Part shown: piece after piece, positions 5,701 to 42,665 of the stretch
Position numbering within the stretch: the first letter of the stretch is position 1
How the letters are laid out: every line of letters starts with the position of its first letter
Translations under genes and position numbers: made by a program
Notes under the pieces: generated by a model
The model's database searches: none
What the model was told of the DNA's origin: nothing
The model's input: only the letters and a program-made list of their open reading frames with translations
NCBI RefSeq assembly: GCF_964204645.1
Contig: NC_134030.1
Span: forward strand, 21,784,210-21,848,209
Direction: 5' to 3'
Length of the DNA: 64,000 nucleotides
Origin: Tubulanus polymorphus
Lineage: Eukaryota; Animalia; Nemertea

Positions 5701-6036
5701 GACACAACTCCGTACATGGATATGGCAGCCGCGAAGGGTAAAGACACAGCTTCATATATAGATATGGAAGCCGGGAAGGGCAAAGACACAACTCCTTATA
5801 TGGATATGGGACCCGGGATAGAAGAGGATACGTACAGGAGTACGGAAACCGGGAAGGACAAACACACAACTCCTTACACGAATACCGGAGCCGAGAAGGA
5901 CAAAGATAGACATAGTTACGTGAATACCGAAGCCGGAAAGGCGCGCCATTTGAAGAAAGATACTGATGAACCCGTGAAAGATGATGTTGAACTTTATTCT
6001 TACGCTACTGTTCAATATACTCGCAATAGGCGTTAG
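2722..6036 (+). CDS. Gene A copy 1: single-Ig type-I receptor with Tyr-repeat tail, ~374 aa. Exons 2722-2821, 3314-3634, 4357-4396, 4834-4876, 5167-5276, 5526-6036
   Basis: Signal peptide MMNTRSFLIIYAILLQLG; Ig-like exon with YIC...W...FRC; TM IIYIACGAIGFLLVIVIIVVIVIC followed by RRRR; GT-AG junctions give one open frame. The two small middle exons are the least certain: they are needed to reconcile phase, and one carries a synonymous aat/aac change between copies. Confidence 0.85.
4647..4786. mobile_element. MITE-like palindromic element
   Basis: Imperfect terminal inverted repeats gagcccagttgcacagtc ... gactatgcaaccggcctc with internal cttaag palindromes; also at ~41273-41412. Confidence 0.6.
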
Positions 6037-8105: not shown

Positions 8106-11100
8106 ATGAAGAATCTATGGAGGAATCCGCAGAAGTGTTTAGTGATCTACGTGATTATACTGTTGAATCTCATGGCGAACAACAACAGCCCACAAGCGTT
8201 TAGAGTCAAGAGAAATACAGGTAAGACAACGTGAAAGAACATATCATAGAGTTTATATGGAGAATGTATTACATAAGATGAAACTTATCACCAGACTTTG
8301 GAAACTTGTATTTGAAATATCTGGGACAAAATGATAGTAGCTGAATAGTCCACTTGAACTGATACATTTACCTCGAATGAAAACCCACAATCTCTCAAGT
8401 GTTTTACATTTTACCATTAAACATTTTAACTATTCAATAATTGTATTTTATCTTCTAAAACTCCATCTACACTTGATTCTTATACCCGGGTTATGCGTCT
8501 CCACTACGATGCTGGTTTTCCGCAAAACCTGGGTTTTAGAAACCGTATTGAAAAAGAAGGGTCCACTCCTTATTCAACCACGTTCGCGTAAAACTTTTAG
8601 AATTTTTACTAGAAGTGTAGAAAGTAGACCCGCGCAACGATTGAACTTAAAATTGAACTACAGATTGGTAGAAATCCCACAATAAAATCAGCGAAAGAAA
8701 TTGAAATCAGAATTCAGAATTCATTGTAAACGAGAATATATTTCGAGCAACGTTTCGGCTAAACACAACTATGAGCCAATCATCAGGCGTACCGATACAC
8801 GAGATATATTTAACAAGATATTTATACAGAAAATGAACTGAAGAATGAGTGATCGAAGTTAAATACAGAGTAAAGTTATTCAAAACATAGACAAGGAAAC
8901 AATAGTAGAAAGAGTTAAGCAACAGCAAACAGCAAACTAGGGGTAAAACGAGGAGGTAAATAAAACACAAAACCCGAAACTAAAACGAGGAGGTAAACCA
9001 CAGGGTAATCTAACAATCACAGAATACATCACAGGCTGTGTCTCAAAATCATAGATAATGCGTGTGAATATTAGATCTTAAAAACATCAAATCAGATTAT
9101 TGTTTATTTCTTGTCGAACCTCTTCAAACGGTGACAACTATCGGAAGACAATTTGCTTAAACAAGTCTGGGGCTCTAGTTCCTCTGAAGTCGGTTTAAGG
9201 TGAATGAAATTGAGATGTTAATTGGTCAATTCTGAACAATGGCTCTGACAGAAAGATTGCCATTTATTTCAGCACCTGATGGAGTTGTACTGGACAGTGT
9301 GAATGTATTACCGGGTACAAGAATATTACGTATATTGTGTATTTGATATTTCAGCACCTGATCTAGTTGTACTGGACAGCGTGAATGTATTACCGGGTAC
9401 AAGAATATTACGTATATTGTGTATTTGATATTTCAGCACCTGATGGAGTTGTACTGGACAGTGTGAATGTATTACCGGGTACAAGAATATTACGTATATT
9501 GTGTATTTGATATTTCAGCACCTGATCTAGTTGTACTGGACAGCGTGAATGTATTACCGGGTACAAGAATATTACGTATATTGTGTATTTGATATTTCAG
9601 CACCTGATGGAGTTGTACTGGACAGCGTGAATGTATTACCGGGTACAAGAATATTACGCATATGGTGTATTTGATATTTCAGCACCTGATGGAGTTGTAC
9701 TGGACAGTGTGAATGTATTACCGGGTACAAGAATATTACGTATATTGTGTATTTGATATTTCAGCACCTGATGGAGTTGTACTGGACAGTGTGAATGTAT
9801 TACCGGGTACAAGAATATTACGTATATTGTGTATTTGATATTTCAGCACCTGATGGAGTTGTACTGGACAGTGTGAATGTATTACCGGGTACAAATATGT
9901 TACTGTCGCAGGAAGGTAAAACTGTTAGTATTACCTGTAAACAGAGCAGCTCTGCAGCGACTGGTGTAGCATTCCAGCTACAAGTGAATAATGGACCAGA
10001 AGGGACCTGGATTGCATTACCTTCAGAATCAGCACCAGTTTGGGTTTTTCAGCCCGATGCTCGTAAAATGTATAAATGTGTGGCCATTAATTCAGCCGGA
10101 ATTAAAGAAAGTCAAATCTACCAATCAGATGTAATCAGTGAGTATGCATCACTTATCAAATAATGCTGGGAAAATAGAAAAAAAGTTTCCTGTGCACATG
10201 TTATATTTTTTCGTGCATATAACTTTTATTTCAGGTATAAAGATAAATGAAAACCCGTGTAAACTGCATGAATTCAAACCATCACTAACTTGTACTTGTA
10301 AAGCCACTAGTAAGATTGGTAATCCAATCATCAAAGTAAAATGGTATGCTGATGGATTTACTGAAGGTTCAACGGATATTGATCAGATTCCCGATCAAGG
10401 CGTAAATACTCCGGTGAAAGATGGAGTTATCAACAGGAATCAGATGCGGTTTAATTTAATGCTGTACGCAATATTGATTCAATGTCGGTTATGGAAGTAT
10501 AATGGGATAGAGTTACCGAAACAAAAACTTCAAGAACAAATACTACATCAAACTCCAATGAACGTTACGTGTAAGTTGGAGAATATTTTCATGAGAGATT
10601 TTTCATTCGATATCAGAGTGACAATAATACATGTTACATCGTTTATTCTATTGGTAACTGCCCATAGTTGGAGATTTAAGAGTTACTATTTCATAACGAC
10701 TGGTGATAATGCCTATGAAATTCTTTCGTTTTAATATTTGGTCCCAAGAAGGTATTTCGAATACTGAAGCGAATTGTTAATAATAACATTAAAAGGACTA
10801 GAATATGATTGTGCATGAATTTGCTTTTGAAATCGAACCTACTAGAAAACGATTTCACCTTCAATGATTAGGCTTAAGATTTTGAGCCCACATGGAAAAA
10901 TTGCAGCGAAATTGGTTAAAATGTTGACGTAAAAAGTTCGTTTCTGTAACAATTGTCGTCTTCGGGTATTCTTATGGCTATATCAGGGATTTTTAGTTTG
11001 TAATATGGGACAAAGCTTCTTGAACCGGGACAATAGGATCACGCACAACTCACCAGAACAAAGGATTCTTTTCATGAGTGCGATAGATACGCCACCTATC

Positions 11101-14100
11101 GTTGATATGTATTGTTGCAAAAACAAATAAACTATATTACAATATAATTATGTCGGGAGTTACACCGTTACATTTCCGTCGATTCAAATTTCGACGCCCT
11201 TGATAAACACACATTCCTCGGAGCGCAAGTAATATTTTACCATGTTTTATGGACGGACGTTTTCTCGATTTTGCACCGATCAGTGAAATTGAAGTGGATA
11301 AACATGATATCATCCAAAAATATATTTGCATCTTTATCTTTTAGATTTTCCCGATGAAATTGAAACACCAGATACTTTCACCGGAGAACCTGACATTAGA
11401 AATGAAGGAGATGTTGTAGAATATACTTGTAGAACAGTGATAGGAAGGCCCGATCCTACAGTGATATACCAACAGAAGAGAAGAGATTCTGAACGATGGC
11501 AGCCAATTCCTGATCCACAACCTCGTAAAGTACCTCTCAAAATGGGTTTAAAAGGTTTTGATACGACGTACAAGTTCAAAGCTGATTTCAAACTGCACAA
11601 TGGAACGTCATTTCGATGTGCTGTAAAGGAGAACCTTACGTTTCCAGAACCTCGACAATTTAATCCAATCATTGTTCATTGTAAGTAACAGTTTCTTTCT
11701 CGAATTCGAGAAATAAGTAATTTTCCCTGCAACAATACAGACCCCAGTGATAGTACAGACCTATCCACACATATAGTATGACACAATGTAACCATGCTAA
11801 GGAGGAACATGGCAGAATCTCATGATGTCATCAGGTTCAAATCCCTGCCGAGGGAGGAACGTGGCAGAATCTCATGATGTCATCAGGTTCAAATCCCTGC
11901 TAGGGAGGAACGTGGCAGAGTCTCACGATGTAATCAGGTTCGAATTCCTGCTGAGGGAGGATGTGTCTACTATGTGTCTACTGTGTTTGTACTGTGACAG
12001 AGTCTCACGATGTCATCAGGTTCGAATCCCTGCCGAGGATGATGGGTCTACTATGACAGGGCTTAAGAACTGTGCTAGGTTAGATACTAATGTTTCTTTG
12101 TTTTTCAATCAGATTTTGCTGCACCAGTTTACAAGAAATCCAGTGAAAATGAAACAAATGCAGCGTATATTGTAACAGTTAATAGTTACCCATTGACTCA
12201 ACAAGTTACATGTGACCCTCCAGCTGTCGTTCAAAAACTATCAAACTCTCAGTGGAATATAACGATACCTATCGTAAACAGTACCACAACTGACTATAGA
12301 GGGCGGTGTTTGGTTGATGGTATTAATGAAAGGGTTATTGATGTCGCTGGTTATCATCACGCCGGTCCAACTGATGAACCAGGTAAGATTCCGGGTCACG
12401 ACTGGATGAATTTTACATGAATTTGAAGATTCAAATGATTCAATTCCATGACATTATAAAACTCGAGGCCATCATCTCTTAACTCGAAATCATTTCTACA
12501 CAATCAAACAATTTACTTATGAAAGTCGTTATTTTCTAAATTGTCACAAAACCTATTAATATATTTCAAAGTCTCAATTTACTAAGTCATTTGTCATTAT
12601 TATTGGGTCTCATTTTACTAGGTGTAAGTCGTCATTCATTTAAAGCGTCACATACATACATATTACAAAAAAATAATTTTTGTATTTTACCTAAAGTGTA
12701 AATCATTTAGATTAGTCAGCACAGCGGAGGAGTCTCGTGACGTCATCAGATTTTAAATCCGTGCGCGATGACGTAATTCTCTGTGTCGTCAGAATTGAGC
12801 GTTTTCTATTATTATCTGTGAATTCATCACATTCAAATATTACACAATGATTTAGCATCTTTAACTTTCTATCTTGAGGCTGTTTGACCCAATCAAGGAA
12901 CGATTAATTTTCTCCCATTTTAAAAACAACTTATTTGCTTTATTCAGAGACTATTTGAGCTTTGAAATTAAGGAACAATTAATTTTTGTTTGACCTAGTT
13001 AATTATTCAATTAAATTGCTGTTACTTTTATCAATAGTTACAATGGAACTATTTCTAGCTTTATCTAATTCAATTCAATCGCATCACCGATTAGTTTGAA
13101 TTTCCGTTTCAGATGCAGGAAATGGAGGAATTGTGGCTGGTGTTGTAATCGGTATATTACTGATATTACTGATTCTAATAATACTGTTTATACTGTGGCG
13201 TCGTGGCTGCTGTAAGTTTTACATAAAACCATCAATAAATCTGAAAAACAATAATAAACAAACTGCAGAAATGAAATACTCTATTAGGGGTAGAAAACCT
13301 AATGATGAACTGGTGGAAATTGTTAGTTCTATAATATATCATATACAGAATGCTAGAAATCCAAAAGTAGTGAACACAGCTGGAAGAATTCAGGGGTCCC
13401 AAGGTGGCCAGATACAGTTCATTCTCAATTATCTGTTCAAATTTCATTCATGCAATTGAATTCAAGAATGTTTGGAACTTAGAAGAACAGAATGTTATCA
13501 TTTCTGGGATTCAGCACGGGTTGGGTCGTAGTTTCAGATGGCAGCAAACATGAAATGTGCTACGACCAAACATTCACCGATTCCATAACAATCATTTTGA
13601 TAGAAACCGCCGGCATAGGTTTTCTTAGCCTCCAGGAGAAGCTACTAAGTAACATCGTTCTCTTCACAAATAACGGTGTTTGAAAAAGTATCCATTTTAT
13701 AATGTTTAGCATCATTCAACTTTCAATCAATTTTCTAGACACAATACGCGCATTATTCAAACCAGAATTTAGATGCACGAGACGCATTAAAAATCTAAAG
13801 CCAGAATATGCATAATGTTTATTTATTTTCGTCTGACATCGATCACTTTCAGATCTGAATCAGTGCGGTCTAAATAAAATATCGTTTTTATATCTATTGT
13901 AAAATGCAGCATTAATTGAATTATCTAATGGCGAATGAATTACTCGTAGATGCACAGTCTTCGGTACAGGCTCGATACAAGTCTCTGCGGGGTCATCAAT
14001 CAACGTTGATAGGTTAAGATTTCTTGCCTACGTAGGTTCTGCATTTTCTCGTTGGGAAGTATCGTTAAGTTGTTGGGTGACGATAGTAATAAATTATCAC

Positions 14101-17100
14101 ATATGCCTACCGGGTATCGGTAATGAAAACTTGCGCCCGGTTCCTTGTCCCAGTTACCATTTATTGCCAACTAGAAGAAATTCCGTAAATCTCTGATTCC
14201 GAAAAATGACAGTACCGGTTTAAACTCGAAAAAGTTACGCAGTATCATTGGTTCAATTGTCTCATGGCATTAGTATCCATGACTATCTTTAGTGGGTGGC
14301 TCCATGAATATCCAAATCACACTGTTTCTTTATTGGGTTGATTTGTCAGGTGAATGTGCATCGTGTAAATAAACAGTATTTCTGTTTTCTAATTTACAGT
14401 ACCGTGTTTGGGTCCGAAATCTAAAGATGTGATTGAATTGTTGCGTTGGACAAGTGAAACCTGGTATGAAAAAGGTAAGATTCTCTCACATGATTTACTG
14501 CACATATTCTCAGATATCGGTTTGATAATTTTAGGTGTTGTTTTCTCTTTGTAGATCATGAGAATTGGGTGAAAACACGTGACCAACTGCAGCCGGGTAT
14601 TCATAGAATTATTAACCCTTTATTTCTATTACCTGTAGAATATCTTGCATGAATAGAGTTCATAGTTTTAGAAATCATCCACTAATCATCTGAAAGATAC
14701 ACAACTGATTTTGCTTCATTATCTAAACTGTAATTATCAATTTAAGTTTATGGTTAACAACGTAATTTCTTGAAGATTTCTTGAGAATTGTTTGATCAAT
14801 TGTGTTGATATTTCGTCTATATATGTTTTAACACACATCTGCAGTCTTTCTGGTGCATGCCTAGCGATCATTGTTCTTTAAAGAAATCAGCATTTCATGC
14901 ACATTTTCGAAGTCTATGGGAAATTTCAAAGATATTTGGCTCATTTTTATTGAGGTCTGAAGTGGACAAAACAACATGCTCCGTAAAAAGACATTGGCTT
15001 GATCGAAATCAAGATGACTAATTTTCGATTTTCGTTTTCAAAAATCAGTACTATTTGCACATCATATTTTGAGGTTTTCTAGAGAAATTTTAATAGATTC
15101 TTTAATCTATTTTTTTTAATGTTTGGTTTATACATGTATCTACCCTAGATGTATCAGCAGTTCTAAAAATGAATAGTTGGAATCAAGACTGGCGGCTATT
15201 GTTACTCGGCAGGGCGGTTAAAACGACCCTCTCCTTTTTTACCAGGTCTAGAGGCTTTAAAAGATGGTCGTTTCTCAATATTTGTTTATTATGGAAATCT
15301 TCTTTCTGACCAGAAACTAGTCCATATTCACTTACGTGGAAATCCTGGACTTCACTTGTAGCAAGTGAGGATCCACCAGGTGCAAGGAGGCAATTCCTTG
15401 CTATTTTTAGAGTCTGACCTTTTCGTGAGAAAGAAGAAAAAGCATGTGAAAATCCCTGATAATGTGTAGGCCTAAGCGTTGTTGTCGTCGTTAACCGGCG
15501 CTTTTTTCGGCAGTCCTCCAGTTCATGGTGTTTCATCGATAGTTCATTGATGTGTTTGGTTGAATGACTGGACTGGTTCCGGGTCAGGCGTATTGTCTGA
15601 TCGTGCCTAGAACGCGTCACCACGCATCTAATTTTAAAACGTTTTCCGCGGGAGGACGCCCACTAATTTAACCCCTCCCTCAAATCCTGGATCCGCCACG
15701 TAAGATGCGGCAATTGAGAATTCCCATTGAAAATCAACTATACACGAGAAACGTTTTTGGATGTCGTTTTTTCATGTTTATCTGTAGCTAATATTTGTGT
15801 TGTTTGTTTAACAGTTGAAACTGGAGACTTTGAGGTCATTGAAAGGTCATTAAGTCCAGGTATATATTTAATGGTTATTGTAATTTCATTTCAATAAAAC
15901 AATATAAACTCAGATAATTCAGTTATAAATCAACTACTTGTTCGTAACGTCGATGAATTCATTTAAACAATTAATTTATTGTCAATTTTTCTTTCTAGAA
16001 ATTGTTAGAATAATTGTCGATATTTATGGAACTAAGAATGATTGGGAGTTAACGAGGGATAAGGATAAACAAGGTAAGAGGAGTGATGACTCAGTTGCCA
16101 AGGTAAGAGCCAAACCGGCTGATTTGTTTGTTGCAACCCGGGGCCGGGCTTATAGACTGGTGTTAACTTTAAACCCGGGGGTTAATCTAATTAATTTTCA
16201 ATTGAGTTAACCCTCTGGTTAAAGATAATACCCGCCTATAAAACCGGGTCCTGCATACAATACTGTACCGGAATATAACACTTCCCCGGGCCTCCTATCT
16301 TCATCCAGCAGTAATTCAAACTGTTTGATGCTCAGTTTATTCAAATATTGAAAAAAATGCTTTCTATATTTCATTTCAGCAATAGCTATCAGAGAATTTC
16401 TGTTTGGACAGTTATCAAGTGATCAAAGTAAGTAATTGTTTACCTATAGTTTGTTTTAAGTTTATGTACGCATGGGATGTATGTAAACATGCGCATGTGA
16501 GTTATGTGAACATGCACATGTGAGTAATGTGTACATGTACATTTGATTGATACATAGTAAGTTGTGAGTTGGGTAAACATGTTCATGTAAGTTAACATGC
16601 ACATGTGATTAGTTTACGTGTTTTAAGTTAACACAAGTTTCATCAATGTTTATATTTTCAGGTATGTTAGATTTGGTGAAAGAAATTCTAAGTAAGTTTA
16701 CGAAACGACTCAATATTTCCTCTTCAACTCGAATCTTGGATTCAAATGTGTTTATAATTATCTATTGACAGGAAAATACGTGAGAATAAACGATTTAAAA
16801 ACGAAACTATCAAATGAGATCGGTAAGAGTTGATTGAATACAGTTATTGATGTATGAGTTTATTGATTATTATTCAACTGTCAACTCATTTTGTAAATGT
16901 ATTACAGATACATTACTGAACAAGAAGAGGTCAATAGATGGCGCTGATGCAGTTTACAATAGAGATGAAGGTACCGTTATTATTTACTGTTCAAATGAAA
17001 TATTCAGCTTCGCAGATAGAAATGTAACGAATTCTATTCAAGATGGCCGCATGGCAGCCTTTTGGCAATAATGAATAAACCTTATAAAAGCGACCAGTTT

Positions 17101-20100
17101 AAAATTTCATCTTAAAAATATCAGACTAGAGCTTCAGAAATACTCAAGTTACAACAAAATTATCAAATTTACAATTGTTATTTAAGAAATAAGATGTGAT
17201 ATAAACTAGGGGTAATGATACAGCATGAAACAGATTTTCAATTAAACTAATTTCAAATCTATTTTCTCCGTGTTTCAGATGAAGTTCATATTAGTTTTAT
17301 GACGCAATTGAATGAAGAGAAAAGACCCCTGACAAACAAAGAGAAACAGTTCATCAGACATGGTCAGTAACACTATGAATTCGGTCTGAGTTCAATTTTC
17401 ACATTTAGTTGACTACACAGGGTTACCACGAGTCTTAAGAGTGTTTAAAGAACTTACTGGCGAAAATGGCTTACTTTTTGGAAAAAGTAGTGATTTACTG
17501 TGTCGCTAGTGTTTAGGATTTATCTGTATTTATCGATTTGCAAAATAAAACGAGCGCCTGTGAATCACACTGAGCTTTTTTTCGTAGGTTTCAAATCCCC
17601 AGTAAATGGTTATAATGAATTTCTATATTTTCAGTTGCTTCAGCAGTTGAATTTATTGTTGATTTCTTTGCTAAAATGTCCGGTAGGTTCCATAAATCAT
17701 TTCAGTAAAAATACTGTGGAGTTTGTTGTGGAATCATTGAATAATTGGTTTATTTTTACTGTAGATGCTGAATTATGTGAACGAGGAATATTCAACATTA
17801 AACGTAGGTTTTAATTCTCATTTATCCTCAACTGAGCGTATAAATTCACGCGCGCTCTAATCTACTGTACTTGTACATGTGCTTTATAATCTACTGTACA
17901 TGTACAAGTCAGGTCTCTGAAGTTTATGTACGTTCTGTAAATACTTTTACCTTGTATTTCAGCTACTGTTGAAATTGCTGGTAAGTTATAATATTCACTA
18001 TGATGTTTAAACTGGTGCTGAGTCTGTTCATTTATAACTGAAATATCACTGTATCTTTTTATAGAAATGTTTGTAAAAGATACACTTAATAAAGAAGTTA
18101 AACAACAGAATGGTGAGTGTTCAGTTAATCTAGGAATCTATCAAGGGAGGAGGGCTTACGACTATAAACTGATTACAAATTAAACATATTTTCTCTAATT
18201 ACAGGAAACCTCGTCACACAAATAGAAAACCAGAAAGTAACTGATGAAACAAAGACAGGTTTGTTGTACATTAAACTAATAATCATAATTTATCCATAAT
18301 TTATTCAGATGTTGTCAATATTAAACTATTTACCGGTACGAAAAAAGTGTAGATACAAATTTATCCTGCAATAGTGAATAATAGAAACTGTCCTTATGGT
18401 TGATATTACAGAAATGGGAGTGGCCGACTGGGGCCGTTTTGTGAACAAAGATATTTGTGGTAAGACTGAAAATGTTATTCTTTCCCGTTTTTTCACGCTA
18501 ATTACAATCGTTTTGTTAATGAGAAATCTGAAGTACAATAAAACCAGCTAGACCCGGTGATGTGGAACAATTGGCAACGTTGTCAAAATTCATCCGCTTT
18601 CTGGGAAATTTAACGTGTTATAAAACCCGGTTAATCCAGATGTATTTGGATGAAATTCTAGTTAGAACTAATCTACCAGATCAGTTCAAACTAGAATTTC
18701 ATGAATTTCATGTATTGTAATTTCATTAGAATAACATGAATATTGACCAGACAAAGATATTTGAGCGAAAGTTTTATTCTTTTATTTTTTACGTTTATTA
18801 CAAATCGTTTCGTTAATGAGAAATCCGAGGTACAATAATAATATCACTACCTGGTAATGTGGAACAATTGGCAACGTTGTCAAAATTCATCCGCTTTGTG
18901 AAAAATTTAAGGTTTAATAATACCCGGTTAATCCAGATGTATTTGAGTGAAATTCTAGTTTGAACTGATCTGATCAATATTCATGTTATTTTATTCTATT
19001 CATTTGTAGAATCAGTTTTATTGGCGTCAAGTTTGCAGAAATTAGAAGAGAACAAACATTCTACAGAACTAGATAAAAGTAAGTGTAAACTTTCTTTGTC
19101 CCTAGAACTAAATTTACAGAGTATTTGATGACCATGAATTGAAGATGAAATTTATTGATGTCATCAGATTATCAGAGGCATCTGTTATGATTCAGAGCCA
19201 CGTTTTAAGTGGTTTTAAACTAAGAATGTTGCTAGGTGACAGTTTGTGTTGATGTGACTATTCTTAAGACCGAGTTCGAATCATAGCTTGAAGAAACCGT
19301 GTTTTGATTGTCATGCATACATCACATGGGGTGGCTCTGACAATATCCAAATCATATCATCATTAGAGGCTAGCTGAGGGTGATTTCTGTCCAAATCTTG
19401 CATTATGGGAAATGATTTTGTGATAAGTTTATTTCATTGTTCAACTGTTTTTCAGGTATCTATGAAATAAGCCGAGCTATCCACGTGATTTCTCTTAATT
19501 TTCTGATAAAAAAACTTGTTGGATTGAATTTTTATCAGATATTTGAAAAGAGGTTTAAAATAGCAGTGTTGATTTTAGCAGTAGTTGATGCTGTGTTGGA
19601 ATCATGAATTATATTCTTTTTTTCAGAAATTAAATTGAAAATCGCAGTTTTTGAATCTATCAAAGGTAAGAGGTTTATGTATAGATTGCATCAGAATCAG
19701 CAGGGTTTATTCCATCATTTTCCAAGATTCAACTTAAGCTCAATTTGTTTTCTGAGAACTCAATTTCAGTTCTGATGTCATTTTCCTGGTAATTTATCTT
19801 CACGAATCACTTCTAGAATTGTACGCTGAACGAGCTGAAAGATTTCAGAAAGAACTCAAAGAGAAACTGAAACAAGAGGAAAATGAAGAGAGAAAAAATG
19901 AGGAGGAATTGAACAGAATAATTCACAGTTCAGTTTGTCAGGCGTTTAAATATATCACTGATATGAATGAAAGTAAATATCGATTTTATATCTCAAATTA
20001 TACATGCACTTAACATGTCACATATTATGTGTGAATGAATGCTCATGTAACATGTTCATGTGAATGAATGCACATGTAACATGCTACATGTAACATGTGA

Positions 20101-26100: not shown

Positions 26101-29100
26101 ATTTGAATTCATAATAAAAATCTGTTTGATTTTCTATCTATTTATATTTCAGCGGGTCCAGAAGAGATAAGTGAGTTCTGAGATGAGTAGAATTTATTTT
26201 AGATTTTCACTATTTTGATCTTTAAAGTGATTGTTAGATGTGTGTAGTGACGGGTACCGGCATCTGTGTGAACTGATGCAGACAATCACGCACGATTCAT
26301 TGGCTTCACAAGAGCAACAATCATTATGAGTTCAGTGATAACTTGTTATTCATAATTGCCGCCCCCATAAAACATTTTAATGCAATTTATTTCTCCAGAT
26401 ATTTTATACAGAAAAAAATATCACTAAAATAGAAGCCAGTTGTCAATATCATCACGTGGTGGACCTAAAACCTTAAGTAACACTTATCTGTTTATCAGAC
26501 AGTTGTAGTCAGCGCTTGCCTCTGATTTTGTGGAAACAATGAATAATAGTGACGTCGAATTACAAGTCACACGAGTTTGTTTAAGTCAGTGATTTTCTAT
26601 ATTGATAGATTCTAAACTACATGAATTAGCTGATAAAGAGTTTGAAGATAAGAAAGGTACTGTACACATTACAAAGTGTGAAATTCAACATCTTTCATGT
26701 CTTAAATCTTATTGATGTTTTATGATCAATGATGTTTATTACAGTCATTAGGGAACAATCATTCGAACGTATAAAGACACCGGAAGAAATATTGCCTCTA
26801 AAACTGAAAATACCGGCACAACTCGGCACTGGTAAGTGACTACACTGAAAAACTGCATGTTTGAATTGGAATTCGATACAGTAAACTTTGCCTCGAATAA
26901 ACTGTTAATATTTCACTGAGTTGAGAATCAGGTTAATCCTTTTATCACAAAACTTTCAGTATTTTCAAAATTTTAAGATTTTATCTAAAATTTTTGTAGA
27001 TTTTGATTCAGCTGGACGAGATGCAGTTATTCTGCCGGATCAAGCAGGTATTGTATAAGTTAAGTCTGTAAAAAAAACTTAAGATAACCCGTTTAATGTC
27101 ACTGATCTCTTAACGCCAACATATTTCAGGGAACAAATGCCGCAAATCTAAATTCAATGGAAATACCATTCTTTATAAAGCCACATATTTCATCGGTGCC
27201 AACAGTGGTATTATGAAAGACTTTTTCTGTGATAACAAAATTTTCAGTTTTTTAAGAGCACTAGCCTGAAATATATTCTGCAACTGATCTTTGTCCTTGA
27301 AAAGACGATAAATTCTTCTAAGTTCTTGTAACGAATCCTTAAACTGCTCTTTATTAATACCAGAAATCGCTCTTCCGTCATATACCTAATTGTGAGGTTA
27401 AGGCCCTGTTTATGGTGTTCTAACCCATGGTTTACTGGTCTTTTGAATGTCCAGGAAGTGAATGTCTTTTAAAGCGACAAAAGTTTTAAATTCAGAAACC
27501 ACACTCAATGAATGTTGTGTCTATGTTTGCTGTTTTTATGTGAATTTCAGTGAAATATTTCAAGGATGAATTCATTATTGCAATACAATCTGATGAATCA
27601 TTGAAAACTGCTACTCGAACTGCTTTAGATAACAGTAAGTTACGTCTACAGTAAACTACATTTATATCTACAGTAAACTACATTTACATCCATAGTAAAC
27701 TACATTTACATCTACAGTAAACTACATTTGTGTACATCTGTAAGACTACATTTATCTACAAAATCAAAAATTAGATACAGTTATTCACTAAGATTTTCGA
27801 TTCTTGAAATTTTTTTCTATTCTTAAGCATCAAGCGAAATCAACAATTTGCTGAAGAAAGAAAACTGGAAAGGTAAATTGTTTGATGAAATGTGTGTAAA
27901 ATGTTTATTTTTACGAATAAAAAAAATGAATATTTTAGGAACCACAAATGACTGGTTTATTTTAATCACTTCTATGATTTCAAATTAACTGCTGATTTTA
28001 CTGTGTAAAACAATTTAAAGATTTTCTTCTATTTTCAGTTAATGGAATTTATAATGATGTGAAATCCAGAATACAATCAATGTCTACAGGTTTGTATTTC
28101 AACGATTCACTATCAATTCACCCATTAAAATGTAACCGTATTCTCCCCCGGGCAAGCGCCCTTTTTGTGACCCATATCATATCATTTCATCACATCATAC
28201 ACTTGTATAACGGTTTATTCCAATTTCGCCGCTTATTTATTCCAATTTGGCCTTTTTCCCAATCAACCCCTTTTCCCATTTTGCCCCTTTCCTATTTCGC
28301 CCTTTGTTCACATTTTCACCCCGTTTTTGTACATTTTCAAAGAAGCTTAGTTGAATTTAAGCTGCATTGTAACATGATTATGTTAATTGTGCCTGTGCCT
28401 AAATAACTTCAGTCATTTAGATTATGTGAATTTCAATCAAAAACAGAAAGGTACAAGGTGGAAAAGGGGCAAAAAAAAGATTGGCGGGGCTGAAAAAATG
28501 GTAAGGGTGAAATTGAAAACGAGTGAGATGGGAAGGGGCTAAATGGAAAAGGGGTCAACTAGGAAGGGAAGACATCTTGTATATCATGTCAACACGCATG
28601 CACGCACGTCGCACGCACGCACGCACGCACACAATCATATTGCGTTACGTCATTTTTGCTTGTAAAATGTAATTTCGAAGTTGATTAACTTCATTTTATT
28701 TTTCATCACGGAACGATTTTCATTGCTGAATTTACGTTCTTTTTCTATTTGTGATTTCAGAGGAATTAAAGAAACGAAAGGAACGAAAAATCGTAGCTTA
28801 TAGAAGTGAGTAAAATGCGTGTTTGATTTATTCAACAATTCCACAGTTTTGAGTTACCCTAAACCTATTAACACTAACACTAGACTCCCTTCCCCTAACA
28901 CTAACTAGACTTCTAAGCTGTCCACTATTGAGATGAACAAAATTCAAAGAAATAGAAAATTAGGATATTTTTTTCTCAAAATCGCTTCACATCGCAAAAA
29001 TACCTCAAACTCTTGACAAAAAACATAGACCAATATTACATACAATCTTGAAAATAAAGTATAGAATTAAAGCACACTGAATAATCATATAATGAATAAT

Positions 29101-32100
29101 AATGATAATTTCAAAAAAAATAACAGAATTAAACATCAGCAGAAATAAATACTCATGAAAAAGAATAAATCTATAACTTTTTTTTGAAAGATGATAAAAG
29201 CGTTTAGTCGCAATGATATTCTACAAATGAATAAGATTTAAAGAAATTTAGATTTAAATGAAAACAAGTGAAAAGTGAACTGTATGAATTAACTTGTTTA
29301 TATATACTCAATGTTTATATATGAATTATTGTTGTTTTCTGTTTTTCAGTAAAAGATGAAATAGCGAGTAAGTACTGATAACATCTTCCACATTAGAGTC
29401 TAGATAAATAGATATTTGTCATGTCCTGTTTTGAATAATGGTTCTCATATAGCTCCTAAATCAGTTCAGAGTACTTGAAATGCTGCACGAAATGCTGCCT
29501 TAGAAAGGAAACATTTCAGGGGCTTCCCACATTCATCAATGGATGAAATTGCCCGTGGAGGCTTCGGGCGGATCTAGCCTAGGTTTCTGTGAGTACCGCT
29601 CAACTGTGGAAGGGTAAGCCCAATCATAACCCAATTACGGTACTCCCTCAGAAAATCGTGAAGTTTTCTAGGAAATATTTATGAAAGCAATAAGAAGGTT
29701 ACCATTTTCGATTATTCGAATTAACCATTTCTATTACTTCTACCAGATTACTAGCCTGGAATATAACATACATGGTGTACAACTCAAACCCTGATCAAAT
29801 TCAAATCAACTCATCGATAATAACTCGCTTGCCAGGGGTAATTTCTTCCTGTTAAAACGAGATTTTCACGAGGAACGTGAAAAATAGAAGGGTTTTTCTA
29901 CAAACTGAGTACCGTTCAAGGCGGTAGTAGGTTACGGTAAGCTGGATCCACCCCTGGGCGGCTTGTTCCACAAATTTGGGGTACTACATGTACTATTACT
30001 TCTTCATGGCTCGTAGTATTTGACTCGCAGTGGCTTTCGACTTAAATGAATAAATCTGTGGAGATGAAAAAATTGTCCTGATTGATCTTCGATATCCCGG
30101 TTTATTTATAAATCAGTACAATCAATATTCATTCTCTGGTTTATCGACTTGATTTGTAGATGTGAAAGGAGAACATGTTTCCCTCTCCCTGCAGTAATCT
30201 ATTGTGTTTATTCTGTTTCAGTGAAAAACATCAAACTAATTATTGCAAACAGAATCCCAATATATAAAGGTGAATACATTGTGTAGACTGTTAAGTTATA
30301 CTAGCAAAGAACCAGCCGTCCTGAACGGGTTTTATCGTGATTGAGTTTGAGTTGATTATTTTACTTCTCATGTGGAATACACAGTTATTTCGCATAAAGT
30401 CGACTGTATTTTGTAGGAGGATATTGTGACGCTATAGCAACATAAATAGTTTACATCAGTTGACATCATGATAGTTTATAAATATGTCTTTGCTCCTCAT
30501 TAGGTACATTTTAACATTTATAATTACAGGCACGCTAGTGACTGTTTTAGAAGAGAAATGTAAAAAGGCTTCCAGTTGGACATTCAAGAACTGGGTTTAT
30601 GATATATCACTCGTGTGTAAGTTCACAGTGAAATTAGTTTGTGATTTATAATAGAATTCTATTGTATAAAAACTTGTCTATTGTTTATTACATATAGTGT
30701 CTGAACTCAGTGAATTAACCAGTAAAACTTTAAAGACAAACACAGGTTATTGGAAACAAGTCAAAGAATGTTTCGGTGAATTATAAATTCTCGTTTCACT
30801 GAATATTAAGCTTTTTATTAAATAATTCAATCTAAATTTTGAATAATAATTGTTTCTGTTTGAATAGGAGATGAAATTGACAGGGAAACAAATAAAACTG
30901 AACTGACAGAAATAGGTGAATATAAAAAAAGATTCAGATAAACAAAATCATTGAGTTCATTAAAGATGAAATTAATCAGATCTCCAGAGGCATCAGTTTT
31001 GATTCAGAGTAATGTAAGATAAAAGTGTTTGAAAGACGTCGTCACTGTTTGATTGTTCACAGTTTGTATCTATGTGAAAATTTAATTTGTTTATAGTTGA
31101 TGAGTGTTTGCGTGAATGCACTAAAACAATGCGTGATAAATGGAGTTCTGGTGAGTACCCCTCATCAGTACTTCTCGTGAGTACATCTCATGAGTACCAA
31201 TTATGAGTACCTCTTTTAAGTACTTCTCATGAGTGAGTACCATATTCAAATAACTACCAGGCATCTTGGGTACGTCAAGTACAGGACTCAAATACAAATC
31301 GGAAATTGAGTACCCGCGAGTAACATATAGAAACCAGAAGTTTAGTGAGTTTAGTAATTTAACACAGATTAACAGTCCGGTACCTGAATAAAGACGTTTC
31401 CAGTTTCAAGGCGCCAGTGAGTTTCTAGTGAAATGGCGGTGCGCAGTGGGAGACCCCTTTGGCGTGTAATCTCGAACTCAAGCGGTTACAAATTAGTCGT
31501 CAGGAAAGATATTCAAAGAATTTTAATGCAGGCCCAAACTGCAAATAACCCTCTTTAACCTCTGCGAAAACTGGAAATATAGCTTTAAGAGATACTTAGA
31601 TATTTTAAAATTAATAAATATCGCGATTTCTTTTACGCGCGGTTAAGATATGCGGTCCTTGGTTCAACATTGTCACTGTTCTCAATGTTTGCGTTCAAAA
31701 CATCCAAAAATCATGTATAAATGCTGTATAACTTAAGTTCATCGAACAAGGGACTGCAGAACTATATGATATTCAATCTAAAGTTATGTTTGAAAAATGA
31801 GCGCAAATTATCGCAACAATGGGGACCTCGAGGGACCGCCACAAAATGACGCCTAGAAACTGGAAACCCTTTATTATGACATTTAAATGATGCAATTCAT
31901 TGATCAAGTTAAACTAGCAGTAAACTGGACCAGTCTGAATGACTAGTTTTCTTTAAGCTTTTATTTCATGTTTTAGTATTTTTAGACGATTTCAAGACCA
32001 ACAAGATGATTGTAGATTCAGGTAAATATGGAAATTCATTCACAGGTAACAGATAAGACTCAATCTTGAATTGAAATAAACTGGTCCCTAAATCTTCAAA

Positions 32101-35100
32101 CTGTTTAATAAAGTTTTCTAATTTAAATATCCATCTTTGAAATAAATATATAGCGAGTTTAGCCCGCCGCACACGGCAAAACATTTGTTTCGCCGAAACA
32201 GAAAACACGTTTTTCAGAAAACGTTTTTTGCTCGTGAAGATCGTTTTTCAGTTCGGCGTTTTGTGTTTTGCCTCCCCCGCACACGGCATGACAAAAAACA
32301 TCGAAAACGTTTTTGCACGAGGAAAAAACGTTTTTTGGGTGCCGTCTGCGTTGGGCTTTATTATTCAACTTAAAATCTGTCTCTTGCATGTGCAAGTCAC
32401 GGAGTAAACGTTCTAATTTCTTAGAGAATGTCACAGAGTTAACCATTAATTGTTTTTTCCAAATACAAATGTTTACGACAAACCGCAGTCTTTAAAAATC
32501 TTAATAAATAACATCCAGGGGCTCTTAAACCTATCCTTAACATACAGGTTGAAATATATTTTATAGAGAATGTTGCATTAAGTTTAGTTTGTTTGCACGA
32601 AATCATTTTAACCCACAAGTTAATGATTCAACGCTTTACAATTGTAGGAAAAATGCCAGGGGTGTAAAAGTACAATAGTGAATATAAGTACACGCTTGGG
32701 GTAATATAAATTATCAAATCAGCCACGTTTTAGGAAATTTAAAGAGGGGGAACTTAGGGTACTAAAATACAACCAAATACAGCCAAATACAAACAAATCA
32801 ACCAAATACAACAAATAAAACCAAATACAACCAAATACAATAATTAGTTGGAAATAGAAAGAGATCATTGATAAGATGACGGATAATTAATGCATTCAAC
32901 TTGAATCTATGTAAATAACTGAATTTTTTCATAAGATGGCCTTTTTCCTCCTACACAATAAGTGGCATTTTTACCGGTGGCATTTTTCCTATGTCGCAAA
33001 ATTTTTAATAGTTTCTAAATGTATCTCAATTCGAAGTGGTTTCGCGAAGTTCAGTAAACAGAGTGCAATCAAAGAGAAAATGTAATTCATCCCCAAAACA
33101 TTGCAAATTGGGCACATTCTTTCATTTCTAGGTATATGGAAATTATGTGAATATGTCTATCGGGAATAAATCTATCCAGGAAAATTATGTCCCAGGGAAT
33201 AAACGCCCTCTGAAAAAATATCCCTTTTCTAAGAAAGGACAAAATGTCCCAGTCTATCATTACCGGTACTTATTTGGTAATTAAGAAAATTTCATATCAA
33301 AATAACACGAGAGTTCAAACTTGTTAATTATGTAAATTTCAAACTAAACATCAAAAGAAAGAATTCATAAGTGATCATACGAATTATAAAATTTTAGTAT
33401 CAGTTCGTTTTGCTTATGAGAATTGTTGTCAACTCAGTAAGAAATCAAAACAATTATTTCATTCAGGGTAATCCTGATAATGAATATCTCAGTGTATCAG
33501 CAAATGACTTCACTTTAATTCAAATTCGTAGAATTCGATAGATGATTCCATTGAGCTTAGATTGTTTACCAGATACAGTTTTACACCAAAAATTAATCAT
33601 TCTACGCTTTACCTCAATGAACAAAGGATAACGCGCCCTAACTCTGCTAACACCGGTAAATTATGCGAATACTTCGTCACTATCATTAGAATTTTGCATA
33701 AATACATATTTTCTAATGAGTCTAAATTTTCATATCCGCAGACCTTGCAACCATACATGGCAACAGGGGCAACGCACATATCAAATAATTTAAACATTAC
33801 GTCGATTGGAAGTTTCAGGCGCCTACCTTTTTGAATAATCGAAAACATAGCTCTCATAGCTTTATCGTAAAGATATTTTCTTGCTTTTGCAAAACTTCCG
33901 TTCCAGTTAAATGTAACTCAGAGATACACATTATCTTCAACTTCAATCTCCAATTCCTGATTACCGAACATAAATTTCTGAATTTGCTTAATTCTGGTTT
34001 TACTTCGCACAAACAAAGACTAATATTTTCGTTTTATTGACGTTTATCCCGAGTTCAGATTTGCTATAAACGATTAAGTTGGGTTGCCACGGTCATTTCA
34101 AAAAGTCCTAAATATCATTCAAAAATAAAAAAAAAGGAATAGGCCACAGGTTTTCTTGTCCTTCTGTCTTGTCTATAATAATTTACGCATATGTCACTAA
34201 TTTGCAATTTTTCCTTCAGCCCAGTACTGCCCCCTGGTGACTGTATGAGATGTAACAATTCCGTTATTTGTATTGTAGAAGAGATTTTTGAAGCGATAAA
34301 AGGCGAATATTTTCAAACTCCCGAATTTAGAAGTAAGTTTCCAATAAAATCAGAACCTGTTTTAACAACCAGAACTCAAATATTAATATCTGTATGTATT
34401 GTATTATTATTTATAGGATCAGTTGTGACTGCAGTGAATGAAGCTATCCAGAATTCAGGTATTTGTTAAATATTCTTCAAAAGTTCGAATTCCGTGTTTG
34501 AATTGAGCTCAGTTTGACTGAAGGCGCTTTCTTTTTCAAAATGTAAACTTATATTTTACAGATAGATCACAACACGGCAAAACACCAAACTATGAAGCTG
34601 CAGGTTTGTAAAACTATAATTTCTGTAAATGAATTTGACTTGATGTGGCTGCTACACAGGACCGAATATCATAGATTAGGGGGCAAAATATTCCCCTGGA
34701 CCCAGTTTTATAGACTGGTATTATCTTTAACCCGGGAGTTAACTTAATTGAAATTGAATCAAGTTAGCCCCCCGGATTAAAGTTAATACCAGTCTATAAA
34801 ACCGACCCCTTGGCCCTGGAAACTTTTTGAAAATTGTCAGTAGTTAACATAGTTTCTCAATGTTGCTATGGTGGTTGTCAGCCTGTTTGAGGATTTTCCC
34901 CACGAGGATCATTCATTTATTACGTATGCAAAAAATTCAGAAAAAGCCTCGAGTAAGCTGATAATAGTTAGATCGAGTCCACTATGTAGAAAAAGAGTGG
35001 ATGAAAATGTAGTCACGTGATAAAATTCATCCGGAGCAGAATTGAATTTTAAAAATCATTAAGGTGCGTACAATACGCATTATTATTTACCCCTCCCCCT

Positions 35101-36658
35101 TTTGTTCACAAAAGTATGCAATTTAATAAGACCCCCTTTGTACAATTTGATTTTTGAGTTTAACCCCCTCCCTACCCAAAATGCGTACCTAATAATTGGG
35201 TGACCCCTTAAAAGGTAACTTTGAACCCGCCCTATGAAACTAGGCCCATGATGATGACCACAAAGATGAGGTAATTTTCAGTTGCTTTCCCTTAAGGATT
35301 TTATTCTATTATTTCAGTGAAGTGGATAGCTGATAAAATGAAAGGTAAATTGACTGGTAATAATACTCAATTTCGTGATGAGTTTGTGTTGATGTTTACA
35401 AAAGAATTCTAATTTCAGGTTTCACGGTTAAACCATCTGAAACTTATGGTATGTAATATAATTGTTATATACAGTTGATTATAACGGTCGCTGTCATCGT
35501 TGTTGTCACTGTCACTGTTCACTCAACACGAACATTTATCAGAGAACAAATTTGTAAAATCAAACTCAAATTCAATGAAAATACCATTTATAAATCGCCA
35601 AAATTCATTATGAAGTCATATTTTTCATTGGTCCCAATAGTGGCTTGACTATATTTATACATGTATCTTGTGTGGATGCCTCATCTGTCAGACAACTGGG
35701 CGGGAAATTGAGTAACAATTCATTAAAAAATCCTGACGTTTTTTTCAGAGAGTAATGAATTTGCTAGACTTGTACGAGCAAAAGGTAATGAATGAATTAT
35801 GTGTGTTAAAATTGATGTTATCGATTATGATAATGTTTTATGATGCTATACGTAATTTAATTTCTGTTTCAGTAATTGAAAAATCAAGAAATTTGATGGA
35901 TGAGATACGTGCTATAACAAATAAAAGTAATCAATATTGACTTCAATAAACATTTTACTGACTCGATAATTCCATATTCATGGATTCATGTTTCCACATA
36001 TATATATATATATAACGTGTCTTGTGGTCCCCAAACCGGAAAATCAGGAATTTCAAAATAATGTTCTTTAAATTCATTTTGCGCTTCAATTTTCTTCGGC
36101 GATCTTTTTTTGAAAATCTCCTTCATCCACGAATCACCAGTAAATGTTGACGTCACTGTAGTGTATGATGTTATCTGCTCAATTTCCATCTGGAAAATGA
36201 AAAATCACCCATGAAATACTCGGGTTTATTGACTTCATGTAATTGTGAGAACTATCCATAAATTCTGGAGCGGGTGATATATAGTTGTATAAAAACAGTT
36301 ACAAGCTGAACACATCTAAAACAGAGCAAACTCTAGGGGCTACTGATAAAGTATTGTGAATATAAGTTAAAGTTGACGGGTATCTACACTTAGGGAGTGT
36401 GCAGTTGTATTTGGTGTTTGGTTTATATTGTACATATATCTATTTATAGAAGCTCCTCGTAAAGAAACTGCTGGTGATCGTAGATCAGGTATTAACCGAC
36501 CAGTGAGTGATGATGGTGGGTCACCTGAAGGTGGTTTAGTGAAATATGAAGATGAACCTAAAGGTGCCTGTAGTCAGAGTGCTGCTGATGATAGTCACAC
36601 AAGTGACACCGCATCGAGTGGTGATCGTGAGCGGGGTGATATCGGTACACAAGTCTAG
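8106..36658 (+). CDS. Gene B copy 1: Ig-superfamily-like type-I receptor with a very long micro-exon-encoded cytoplasmic tail (~1490 aa, ~61 coding exons)
   Basis: Exons: signal peptide 8106-8220 (MKNLWRNPQKCLVIYVIILLNLMA...RVKRNT); Ig-like 9847-10137, 10235-10570, 11345-11680, 12113-12382; TM 13113-13211; 54 internal tail exons from 14400-14474 to 35873-35926; terminal exon 36450-36658 ending GTQV-stop. Every junction is GT-AG phase 1 and the joined frame has no internal stop. Confidence 0.85.
9262..9893 (+). repeat. 82-bp minisatellite made of the splice acceptor plus start of gene B exon 2 (8 acceptors)
   Basis: tttcag|cacctgat recurs at 9273, 9355, 9437, 9519, 9601, 9683, 9765 and 9847. 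Confidence 0.95.
9847..12382 (+). other. Four Ig-like ectodomain exons of gene B (291, 336, 336, 270 nt; all phase 1-1)
   Basis: One domain per exon, each with paired Cys (VSITC..W..YKC; LTCTC..W..IQC; EYTC..W..FRC; VTC..YRGRC). The fourth is the most degenerate. Confidence 0.8.
11800..12050. repeat. Intronic ~39-bp tandem repeat with tRNA B-box-like core
   Basis: Units ggcagaatctcatgatgtcatcaggttcaaatccctgc; expanded as a 78-bp unit in copy 2. Confidence 0.8.
16138..16251. mobile_element. MITE-like element (family also at 34698-34810 and ~54250-54363)
   Basis: Inverted ends ccgggcttatagactggtgttaactttaa ... ttaaagataatacccgcctataaaaccgg; a related copy sits elsewhere in the gene. Confidence 0.65.
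18420..18970. repeat. ~300-bp intronic tandem duplication specific to copy 1
   Basis: gttaatgagaaatc...atccagatgtattt...aaattctagtt occurs twice here and once at ~56700-56950. Confidence 0.8.
21705..21893. repeat. 22-bp minisatellite (acatctacagtaaactacattt)
   Basis: About 8 units; shorter arrays at ~27640-27760 and ~59753-59830. Confidence 0.9.
23082..23765. repeat. 27-bp intronic minisatellite (ggtcgactggtactgagtaagggtgaa) x~25
   Basis: Near-perfect tandem units between exons 22979-23026 and 23864-23953. Confidence 0.95.
26153..32021 (+). repeat. 15-micro-exon cassette II (~265 aa): 26153-26170, 26609-26656, 26745-26831, 27000-27047, 27551-27634, 27828-27872, 28039-28089, 28761-28805, 29350-29367, 30222-30269, 30530-30616, 30698-30775, 30868-30915, 31097-31150, 31986-32021
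   Basis: Duplicate of cassette I; all exon length differences are multiples of 3. Confidence 0.9.
31387..31875. mobile_element. Non-autonomous DNA transposon-like insertion
   Basis: TIRs aataaagacgtttccagtttcaaggcg ... cgcctagaaactggaaaccctttatt; absent from the homologous intron of cassette I. Confidence 0.65.
32158..32360. mobile_element. Foldback/MITE-like element
   Basis: Ends agcccgccgcacacggca ... tgccgtctgcgttgggct with internal aaaacgtttt palindromes. Confidence 0.6.
32930..34070 (-). mobile_element. Degenerate non-LTR retrotransposon (LINE) ORF2 3' fragment
   Basis: Minus-strand peptides KLFDMCVAPVAMYGCKVCG...PVLAELGR (33609-33857) and a frameshifted RMCPICNV..DELHFLFDC CCHC-type motif (~33060-33120), typical of the post-RT C-terminus of LINE ORF2. 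Confidence 0.7.
34279..36658 (+). other. Gene B tail final block: 34279-34332, 34417-34458, 34562-34603, 35318-35344, 35419-35448, 35749-35784, 35873-35926, terminal 36450-36658
   Basis: Phase 1-1, length 3n, GT-AG. There is no second copy in the window to confirm these, and extra exons in 32022-34278 could have been missed. Confidence 0.7.
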
Positions 36659-42300: not shown

Positions 42301-42665
42301 ACGCGAATATCGAGGCCGGGAACGACAAAAATACGGCTCCGTACATGGATATGGCAGCCGCGAAGGGTAAAGACACAGCTTCATATATAGATATGGAAGC
42401 CGGGAAGGGCAAAGATACAACTCCTTATATGGATATGGGACCCGGGATAGAAGAGGATACGTACAGGAGTACGGAAACCGGGAAGGACAAACACACAACT
42501 CCTTACACGAATACCGGAGCCGAGAAGCGCAAAGATAGACATAGTTACGTGAATACTGAAGCCGGAAAGGCGCGCCGTTTGAAGAAAGATACTGATGAAC
42601 CCGTGAAAGATGATGTTGAACTTTATTCTTACGCTACTGTTCAATATACTCGCAATAGGCGTTAG
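39383..42665 (+). CDS. Gene A copy 2. Exons 39383-39482, 39949-40269, 40985-41024, 41460-41502, 41794-41903, 42155-42665
   Basis: Same structure and splice sites as copy 1, intact frame, few amino-acid changes. Confidence 0.85.

Follow-up and report, generated by a model that had tools for sequence, protein, structure and literature searches.

An Ig-like receptor gene of Tubulanus polymorphus with a micro-exon intracellular tail and NACHT-LRR sister genes

Diversified invertebrate immune receptors usually vary on the extracellular side. In plants, integrated-decoy NLRs carry a variable extra domain fused to the NLR, and they are encoded by clustered and paired sensor/helper genes that evolve fast. 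The locus described here, termed gene B, encodes an Ig-like receptor with a long tail of micro-exons, and it can also be set beside several animal systems.

An Ig-TM-NACHT receptor that binds bacteria, AjNLRC4, has been described in the sea cucumber Apostichopus japonicus (PMC8699970). It has extracellular Ig, a TM helix and an intracellular NACHT domain in one chain, as do the gene B sister proteins P0021, P0040 and P0051. The likeness is one of architecture. AjNLRC4 differs from the sisters in being without LRRs, in having two predicted TM helices and in having no reported micro-exon helical tail (PMC8699970). Gene B itself, unlike AjNLRC4, contains no NACHT domain.

The Hydractinia Alr genes are clustered and encode unusual single-pass Ig superfamily receptors in which each Ig domain and the TM helix has an exon of its own, and in this they resemble the gene B family; Alr tails are more divergent than the ectodomains, and some have tyrosine motifs, as does gene A, the partner of gene B (bioRxiv 10.1101/2022.03.04.482883). 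Unlike Alr, gene B has no Fn3-like domain that could be found and no ITIM-pattern or ITAM motif matched in its tail; the tail is helical, ~970 aa long and spread over 56 exons, and the family includes NLR fusions.

Schistosoma MEGs encode secreted proteins of ≤189 aa from 10–20 exons, mostly of 15 bp, and are varied by splicing; like gene B, they have a long run of very short exons and fast amino-acid change (bioRxiv 10.1101/2023.06.21.545858). Gene B shares the short, frame-preserving exon run, but its product is not a small, secreted, TM-free protein: it is a membrane protein of 1523 aa with an intracellular tail, a median tail exon size of 48 nt and mainly genomic variation. In word- and length-limited searches no homology to MEG proteins was found, and matches to the gene B family were confined to T. 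polymorphus.

The receptor gene and its exon chain

The window, i.e. the whole 64,000-nucleotide stretch of T. polymorphus DNA that was analysed, contains one complete array unit and part of the next. The features are as follows.

2722..6036, plus strand: partner gene A, which heads each array unit; signal exon 2722-2821, Ig-like exon 3314-3634, small spacer exon(s), TM exon ending at 5276, and a last exon with 11 tyrosines in ~14-aa repeats of YxxM- and YxN-type
8106..8220, plus strand: gene B exon 1, with start, signal peptide and basic (furin-like) site (peptide and cleavage site by inspection) and a phase-1 donor
9265..9894, no strand: 82-bp minisatellite of eight copies that repeat the first Ig exon's acceptor and 5′ portion; only the last copy runs into the exon
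9847-10137, 10235-10570, 11345-11680 and 12113-12382, plus strand: four Ig-like exons, all phase 1-1
13113..13211, plus strand: transmembrane exon, spliced to the 14400 region in run X4
14400..20208, plus strand: proximal tail, 19 micro-exons, including a 156-nt coiled-coil-like exon (19817-19972); dN/dS 0.83
19456..19476, plus strand: degraded 30-nt tail exon with its donor deleted and its acceptor and 5′ portion still in place
20284..25917, plus strand: 15-exon block, copy 1, ~260 aa; dN/dS 1.52
26153..32021, plus strand: 15-exon block, copy 2
34279..35926, plus strand: distal tail, 7 micro-exons; dN/dS 1.66
36450..36658, plus strand: terminal exon, low-complexity Ser/Gly/Asp-rich end and stop
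39383..42665, plus strand: gene A of the next unit
45834..64000, plus strand: gene B of the next unit (RefSeq LOC141906693, P0030), running past the window end

The exons of gene B, from exon 1 through the terminal exon, join into a single stop-free ORF of 1523 aa, which comprises the signal exon, four Ig-like exons, the TM exon, 56 tail exons and the terminal exon. All 61 internal exons are AG/GT-bounded and multiples of three. The tail exons are in phase 1 and 18–156 nt in length (mean 52 nt), with 49/56 at ≤81 nt and 13/56 at ≤36 nt, and they total 2916 nt or 972 aa. An earlier note on this DNA had given 54 tail exons and 2820 nt; the symmetric in-frame run stands and the count is corrected. 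Gene B matches RefSeq LOC141906744 except for 3 aa, and the sole difference from the independent RefSeq protein P0013 (1526 aa) is a 9-nt alternative acceptor.

In a control for chance, an exon finder detected 49 phase-1 exons on the plus strand, where phase 0 gave 12 and phase 2 gave 10, vs 1–2 for the minus strand and 2.6 on average over 20 shuffles. Preservation of the exons, with coding indels in multiples of three, had been proposed for the second unit and is found there and in four further units. True exon length changes are all 3n, and three non-3n rows in the unit comparison are mis-mappings inside an internally duplicated exon.

RNA mapping places GT..AG joints of run X4 at the predicted sites within 13100-19099, among them the joint from the TM exon to the first tail exon. 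Around a dozen joints between micro-exons are seen, and this is at the family level, since reads were placed at 88% likeness and paralogue transcripts contribute; coverage is of the first 16 tail exons. Runs X1 and X2 have no splice joints and behave as DNA, and run X5, from 2015, yielded nothing. The ORF, P0013 and the TM-to-tail joint bear out the proposal that one gene fuses the micro-exon tail to an Ig-TM receptor, and gene B is confirmed as real, with an inner tail of ~970 residues made of 56 tiny in-frame exons.

The family belongs with the Ig superfamily receptors, as it has an Ig-like domain per phase-1 exon, a signal peptide and a single TM helix. Pfam Ig_2 and C2-set_2 match the gene B Ig exons weakly (E 0.04–0.07); in paralogues, C2-set_2 reaches 28.2 bits vs a cut-off of 21 (P0019) and Ig_2 an E of 7.5e-6 (P0021). 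The gene A Ig exon shares ~53% identity with Ig3 of gene B, and it lies ~8–12 kb upstream of gene B copies, NACHT-bearing copies included.

Sister genes and genomic variation

The gene B family has at least 18 copies. RefSeq annotates it as uncharacterised only, and a literature search did not find a paper on it. The same ectodomain is present with three different insides in sister genes: tail only, tail plus NACHT-LRR, and NACHT-LRR alone. NACHT is found in P0004, P0021, P0040 and P0051, the last two without any tail. P0021/P0039 is 76% identical to the gene B protein over 832 aa, and NACHT then follows (E 3e-16). A single NACHT-LRR exon takes the place of the terminal exon in sister genes, and a NACHT ORF follows tail exons on the same strand at three places (C6:22.27-22.26 Mb, C9:0.31-0.32 Mb and C19); the tail-NACHT joins are predicted from RefSeq models and genomic order. 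What the NACHT-bearing genes retain is mostly the proximal tail and only half a block, and most of the fast-evolving part is absent from them. The order of NACHT gain or loss is not recoverable from the ectodomain tree. As predicted from the gene models, the sisters share the ectodomain with each of the three insides, so that in this membrane-NLR-type family the intracellular part, be it tail or NACHT-LRR, is an exchangeable module.

Block copy number across six adjacent units is 1, ~1.5, 1, 2, 2 and 2. Two tail exons are lost in gene B alone, with all five neighbouring units keeping both. The lost 30-nt exon is intact in these five units and present in paralogues, and is absent from P0013; the last micro-exon of the neighbours, which precedes NACHT in P0021, is also missing from gene B. 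Distance matrices of ectodomain and tail show no correlation (Spearman -0.27 to 0.34); the relationships of the two parts are uncoupled, and the paralogues are mosaic. The Ig, TM and tail exons of the family are phase-1 cassettes, and the NACHT-LRR exon, judged by its place in the models, is shown to be one also. The diversity of the family is mainly genomic.

The joining of the ectodomain to NACHT-LRR, with or without the tail, and the duplicated 15-exon block had been missed in the earlier note.

Properties and possible roles of the tail

Based on six paralogues that are under gene conversion and hence non-independent, dN/dS is 1.56 for the distal tail (CI 1.20–2.09), 0.83 for the proximal tail (0.59–1.17) and 0.73 for the Ig exons (0.57–0.95). 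It is thus shown that in the distal tail amino acids change faster than silent sites, which upholds the proposal that the evolvable part is intracellular. It should be pointed out that dS is lower in the tiny exons (0.09) than the divergence of nearby introns (0.156), so that splice-signal constraint may inflate dN/dS. Purifying selection acts on the Ig exons, whereas the distal cytoplasmic tail differs between copies in its sequence, in the exons it contains and in its number of blocks.

The tail had been reported to have no recognisable domain, and the searches agree. Homologue searches with one tail exon, P0001 and P0002:490-1500 returned only T. polymorphus proteins, these searches being word- and length-limited, such that distant kin are possible. 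No tail family exceeded the Pfam cut-off with single exons or full-length database proteins, barring one ADPrib_exo_Tox half-match, and NCBIfam and PDB sequence searches gave no match. AlphaFold predicts helical bundles for two tail units (pLDDT 70–93), and the distal tail of paralogue P0037 is confidently modelled as a small helical bundle; the proximal tail model has a pLDDT of 40. Fold searches with the block and distal model gave no Foldseek E below 1, a best VIA Z of 5.9 and an Atlas TM of 0.26. A six-helix death fold was not found in the two confidently modelled units.

Exon gain, loss and swap, the NLR modules and the fast distal tail point to an immune receptor family diversified inside the cell. 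On sequence grounds, there is about an even chance that gene B belongs to a young, tandemly expanded immune-receptor family with a diversifying intracellular binding or bait scaffold. Because every part is a phase-1 cassette, unequal crossing-over and conversion add, drop or swap exons or blocks in frame, and they have yielded Ig-TM-tail and, by the gene models, Ig-TM-tail-NACHT-LRR and Ig-TM-NACHT-LRR genes, as well as tails of differing length. The micro-exons would be spliced mostly constitutively. The tail may fold into consecutive protein-binding helical bundles of ~110–130 aa; the distal ones, which vary, would be tethered at the membrane and present a binding surface or bait to intracellular factors of pathogen or non-self origin. 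Receptors with a tail alone might relay the signal to sisters that bear NACHT, or to gene A with its tyrosine motifs, perhaps by way of the conserved proximal tail or of Ig domains common to both. A fuller form of this proposal is unlikely: that recognition diversity moved to the cytoplasmic side by way of a new helical-repeat domain, exchangeable micro-exon cassettes, positive selection and a membrane-tethered integrated bait reporting to fused or paired NACHT-LRR, with exon skipping as a second layer.

The family wires one ectodomain to three insides, two of them with NACHT-LRR. By analogy, it may be likened to the plant integrated-decoy NLRs, in which an NLR is likewise joined to an additional, variable domain, genes are clustered and paired, and evolution is fast. 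Plant decoys, however, copy known host targets; for the gene B tail no host template was found, and it is membrane-anchored behind Ig domains. Should the tail prove to be a bait or a variable docking surface, the family would provide an animal counterpart of the plant decoys, as well as a clear example from nature of NLR-linked surface receptors assembled by phase-1 exon shuffling.

It is possible, if rather doubtful, that the tail is instead an effector or oligomerisation domain that signals directly on Ig clustering, so that tail-only genes bypass NACHT. The tail directly precedes NACHT in P0021 and P0004, where NLRs carry an N-terminal effector, other members of the same NACHT clade have short repeat N-termini at this position, and the proximal tail is the conserved part retained in NACHT fusions. 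However, VIA and Foldseek searches with the block and distal model gave no match to death-fold, MLKL/HeLo/RPW8, TIR or HEPN folds, P0040 and P0051 have NACHT without the tail, and a dN/dS above 1, as in the distal part, is seldom seen in effector domains.

Somatic diversification of the MEG or Dscam type, where cells or animals skip different micro-exons to produce many tail isoforms, had been suggested earlier and appears improbable. All 56 tail exons are symmetric, and among 22 alternative RefSeq isoforms in 12 paralogues, seven drop tail micro-exons and three the TM exon. Gene B, however, has one RefSeq isoform, the paralogue skips are of one or two exons apiece, and the X4 joints are consecutive save for one skipped exon, itself absent from several paralogue models. 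Phase 1 is also common to the Ig and TM exons, and the symmetry follows from duplication of phase-1 cassettes; as modelled, the tail exons would encode parts of folded helices rather than free peptides. The variation shown is genomic.

Equally improbable is that the tail serves an adhesion or self-recognition receptor as a helical spacer or cytoskeletal tether under loose constraint, varying by drift and gene conversion and not by selection. Distal dN (0.145) is about equal to, and not above, intron divergence, entire tail exons are lost without harm, and ITAM/ITIM motifs are lacking. Nonetheless, 50% of the distal codons do not vary and 23% vary strongly, all six units maintain frame and splice sites, and the tail is fused with NACHT-LRR in sister genes.

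Most improbable is that the 15-exon block is a degenerate ADP-ribosyltransferase (ART), i.e. a pseudo-enzyme decoy, or a derivative of the GBP/atlastin/Sey1 three-helix stalk: although Pfam ADPrib_exo_Tox matches 9/25 block copies (best E 6e-6, 26.1 bits vs a cut-off of 23.4) and the ESM feature neighbours are Sey1_3HB (0.90), GVIN1 (0.82) and GBP_C (0.80), the ART match is limited to profile positions 29-116 of 196 with no Q/E-x-E motif after it and S-x-S-like motifs not conserved, PDB sequence and structure searches gave no ART chains, Pfam, genome and VIA searches gave no GBP_C or Sey1 match at gene B loci, and the ESM shared features (90–138 of 256) are under the same-family level. The block was also rejected as an R-S-E ADP-ribosyltransferase enzyme (PF03496), with only the Arg-strand half matching and no E-x-E.

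A derivation of the whole tail from one ancient ~120-aa repeat was not upheld, with profile comparisons not above block-shuffled controls (best E 0.03), and it stays a lead. In the putative repeat units the first exon has 18 nt, and the last is a short one encoding a helix-Gly-strand segment.

Gene structure and transcripts

A unit of ~37 kb is present 1.7 times in the window (G000:C6:21784210-21848209 in a 268-Mb animal assembly), with 88–98% DNA identity between the copies. The receptor gene of unit 1, LOC141906744, is real; it is already modelled in RefSeq yet undescribed, and its tail is an orphan domain. The small partner gene that heads each unit is termed gene A.

Features of the window
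2722-6036 and 39383-42665: gene A, whose tail has YxxM and YxN motifs within repeats of ~14 aa
8106-8220 (+): first exon of the receptor gene, unit 1
Between first and TM exons (+): Ig-like exons, four in unit 1
13113-13211 (+): TM exon, unit 1
14400-35926 (+): 56 tail exons, unit 1
36450-36658 (+): terminal exon, unit 1

Every internal exon of the receptor gene has AG/GT borders, a length divisible by three and phase 1-1, and the 1523-aa reading frame is free of stops. The tail exons sum to 2916 nt (range 18–156 nt, mean 52) and introns measure 74–2257 nt. The micro-exon run described in an earlier note stands, with its 54 exons and 2820 nt a slight undercount. An exon finder returned 49 phase-1 exons on the gene strand, 10–12 in other phases, 1–2 on the opposite strand and 2.6 in shuffles. 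The RefSeq product, P0013, matches the traced model except for one 9-nt alternative acceptor.

Transcripts of the family show the first tail micro-exons joined to the TM exon, as had been proposed. In the region covered (13100-19099), contigs from the spliced-RNA run X4 cross GT..AG introns at predicted sites: TM to the 14400 region, 14474-14555, 14596-15815, 15859-15999, 16073-16380, 16427-16662, 16691-16772, 16970-17279 and 18112-18205, with more junctions as loose ends. Because likeness was set at 88%, these joints are evidence at the level of the family. Runs X1 and X2 have no joints and act as DNA-like controls.

An 82-bp minisatellite that repeats the first Ig exon's acceptor and 5' part has eight copies in each unit (9265-9894, 47013-47658). 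A 27-bp intronic minisatellite has 25 copies in unit 1 (23082-23765) and nine in unit 2 (61368-61619). Short, partly palindromic MITE-like dispersed elements lie in introns and intergenic regions (16140-16251, 34698-34809, 54252-54363; 4675-4784, 25946-26054; 7823-8022).

The array and its three architectures

At least 18 copies of the 156-nt tail exon are found in the genome, most of them belonging to a single tandem array on C6. A database search with a single tail exon found five proteins, all 'uncharacterized' RefSeq entries of the nemertean Tubulanus polymorphus; searches with the tail exon and database proteins as queries, limited by word and length, gave no tail homologues beyond this species. 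Gene A, at the start of every array unit, encodes one Ig domain, a TM and, in its last exon, YxxM-/YxN-type repeats that contain 11 tyrosines. YxxM and YxN are PI3K- and Grb2-type docking motifs. Gene A precedes copies of the receptor gene, NACHT-bearing ones included, and this arrangement suggests that the two genes encode paired receptors. The unit at G000:C6:22.065-22.083 Mb has Ig exons and no match to the 156-nt tail exon ahead of the next gene A, as in a copy that is truncated or lacks the tail.

A block of ~260 aa, encoded by exons 25-39, has 1, ~1.5, 1, 2, 2 and 2 copies across six adjacent units; the paralogue P0027 has one extra partial copy. Two exons present in all five neighbouring units are missing from the window gene, one leaving a donor-less remnant at 19456, the other (the last tail exon) gone. 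True length changes between units are multiples of three without exception. How closely two paralogues are related depends on the part of the protein compared: between ectodomain and tail segments the identity matrices have correlations of -0.27 to 0.34 (0.75 among ectodomain segments), and P0027 and P0032 share tail segments at 99–100% while their nearest Ig domains differ.

P0021/P0039 shares 76% identity with the product of the window gene across 832 aa that span Ig, TM and proximal tail; half a tail block and a C-terminal NACHT-LRR follow (NACHT E 3e-16). P0004 is tail plus NACHT. In P0040 and P0051 a short linker connects this same front (signal, four Ig, TM) to NACHT-LRR, and the tail is absent. 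Tail exons followed by a NACHT open frame of ~920–980 aa on the same strand occur at C6:22.26 Mb, C9:0.32 Mb and on C19, and the short micro-exon preceding NACHT in P0021 is the final tail exon of tail-only P0019 and P0027. As read from RefSeq models and exon order, these architectures point to one ectodomain wired to three insides. The window gene itself is no NLR. Cys-rich small exons, absent from the window gene, lie between TM and tail in P0009, P0022, P0028, P0039, P0040 and P0051, possibly as a palmitoylation or metal site. P0041, P0043, P0045 and P0046, on other contigs, belong to the same NACHT clade, are cytosolic and have N-terminal short tandem repeats in place of a death fold.

In the way it works the gene most resembles invertebrate IgSF families that lie in clusters, such as Hydractinia Alr (10.1101/2022.03.04.482883), and its NACHT-bearing sisters liken it to the Ig-TM-NACHT receptor of a sea cucumber (PMC8699970). 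The analysis shows a cassette structure, splicing at family level, shuffling in the genome, the three architectures and a distal tail that changes faster. There is perhaps an even chance that this is an immune receptor whose helical bundles would form a variable binding or bait surface tethered at the membrane, the signal passing through NACHT-bearing sister proteins or gene A.

What the tail may do

The tail is E/K-rich and helical. AlphaFold modelling (25 block + distal sequences) gives two small helical bundles, pLDDT mostly 70–93, with a poor middle; both are predicted to finish with a long helix, a short helix, Gly and a strand. Fold searches with the block and distal models found nothing above background, and no ITIM-type motif was found in the window-gene tail. 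That the tail is itself a direct effector domain is unlikely, if the foremost alternative to a binding or bait surface. The exon pattern and natural swaps of unit ends hint at a deeper repeat structure, in a comparison that is not significant.

Diversification by MEG-like splicing appears improbable. Tail-exon skipping is real and looks modest, since isoforms drop few exons and X4 shows a single skip, although contigs and short-read annotation are compatible with more. The in-frame skipping envisaged earlier occurs in 7 of 22 alternative isoforms across 12 paralogues, which omit one or two tail micro-exons; its extent looks small, and the window gene has one RefSeq isoform. The TM exon is omitted in three of the 22, and the remainder have a shifted splice site or changed ends or Ig content. 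The sole skip among the X4 joints is exon 15815-15859, which four paralogue models also lack. The gene is not a MEG, as MEG proteins are secreted, of at most 189 aa, with 10–20 exons (10.1101/2023.06.21.545858). Isoforms of three paralogues (P0023, P0031, P0036) omit the TM exon in frame and would secrete the Ig domains together with the tail.

A neutral spacer is just as doubtful. When the six units are compared in pairs, dN/dS is 0.73 (0.57–0.95) for Ig exons and 0.83 (0.59–1.17) for the proximal tail; for the distal tail it is 1.56 (1.20–2.09), from six non-independent units, and splice-signal constraint may raise such ratios because dS (0.09) is below nearby intron divergence (0.156). Among distal-tail codons, 50% show no variation and 23% vary strongly.

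Origin of the block from a pseudo-ART or GBP stalk is very improbable: nine of 25 block copies match ADPrib_exo_Tox (best E 6e-6), in the first half of the profile only and with the catalytic glutamate motif absent, and ESM features pointed weakly to Sey1/GBP three-helix stalks, without further support. A full ADPrib_exo_Tox match (E 1.6e-10) does occur in a 1977-aa open frame at G000:C6:20705644-20706150, which lies ~1 Mb away from the array, close to distant Ig paralogues (20.4–20.6 Mb).
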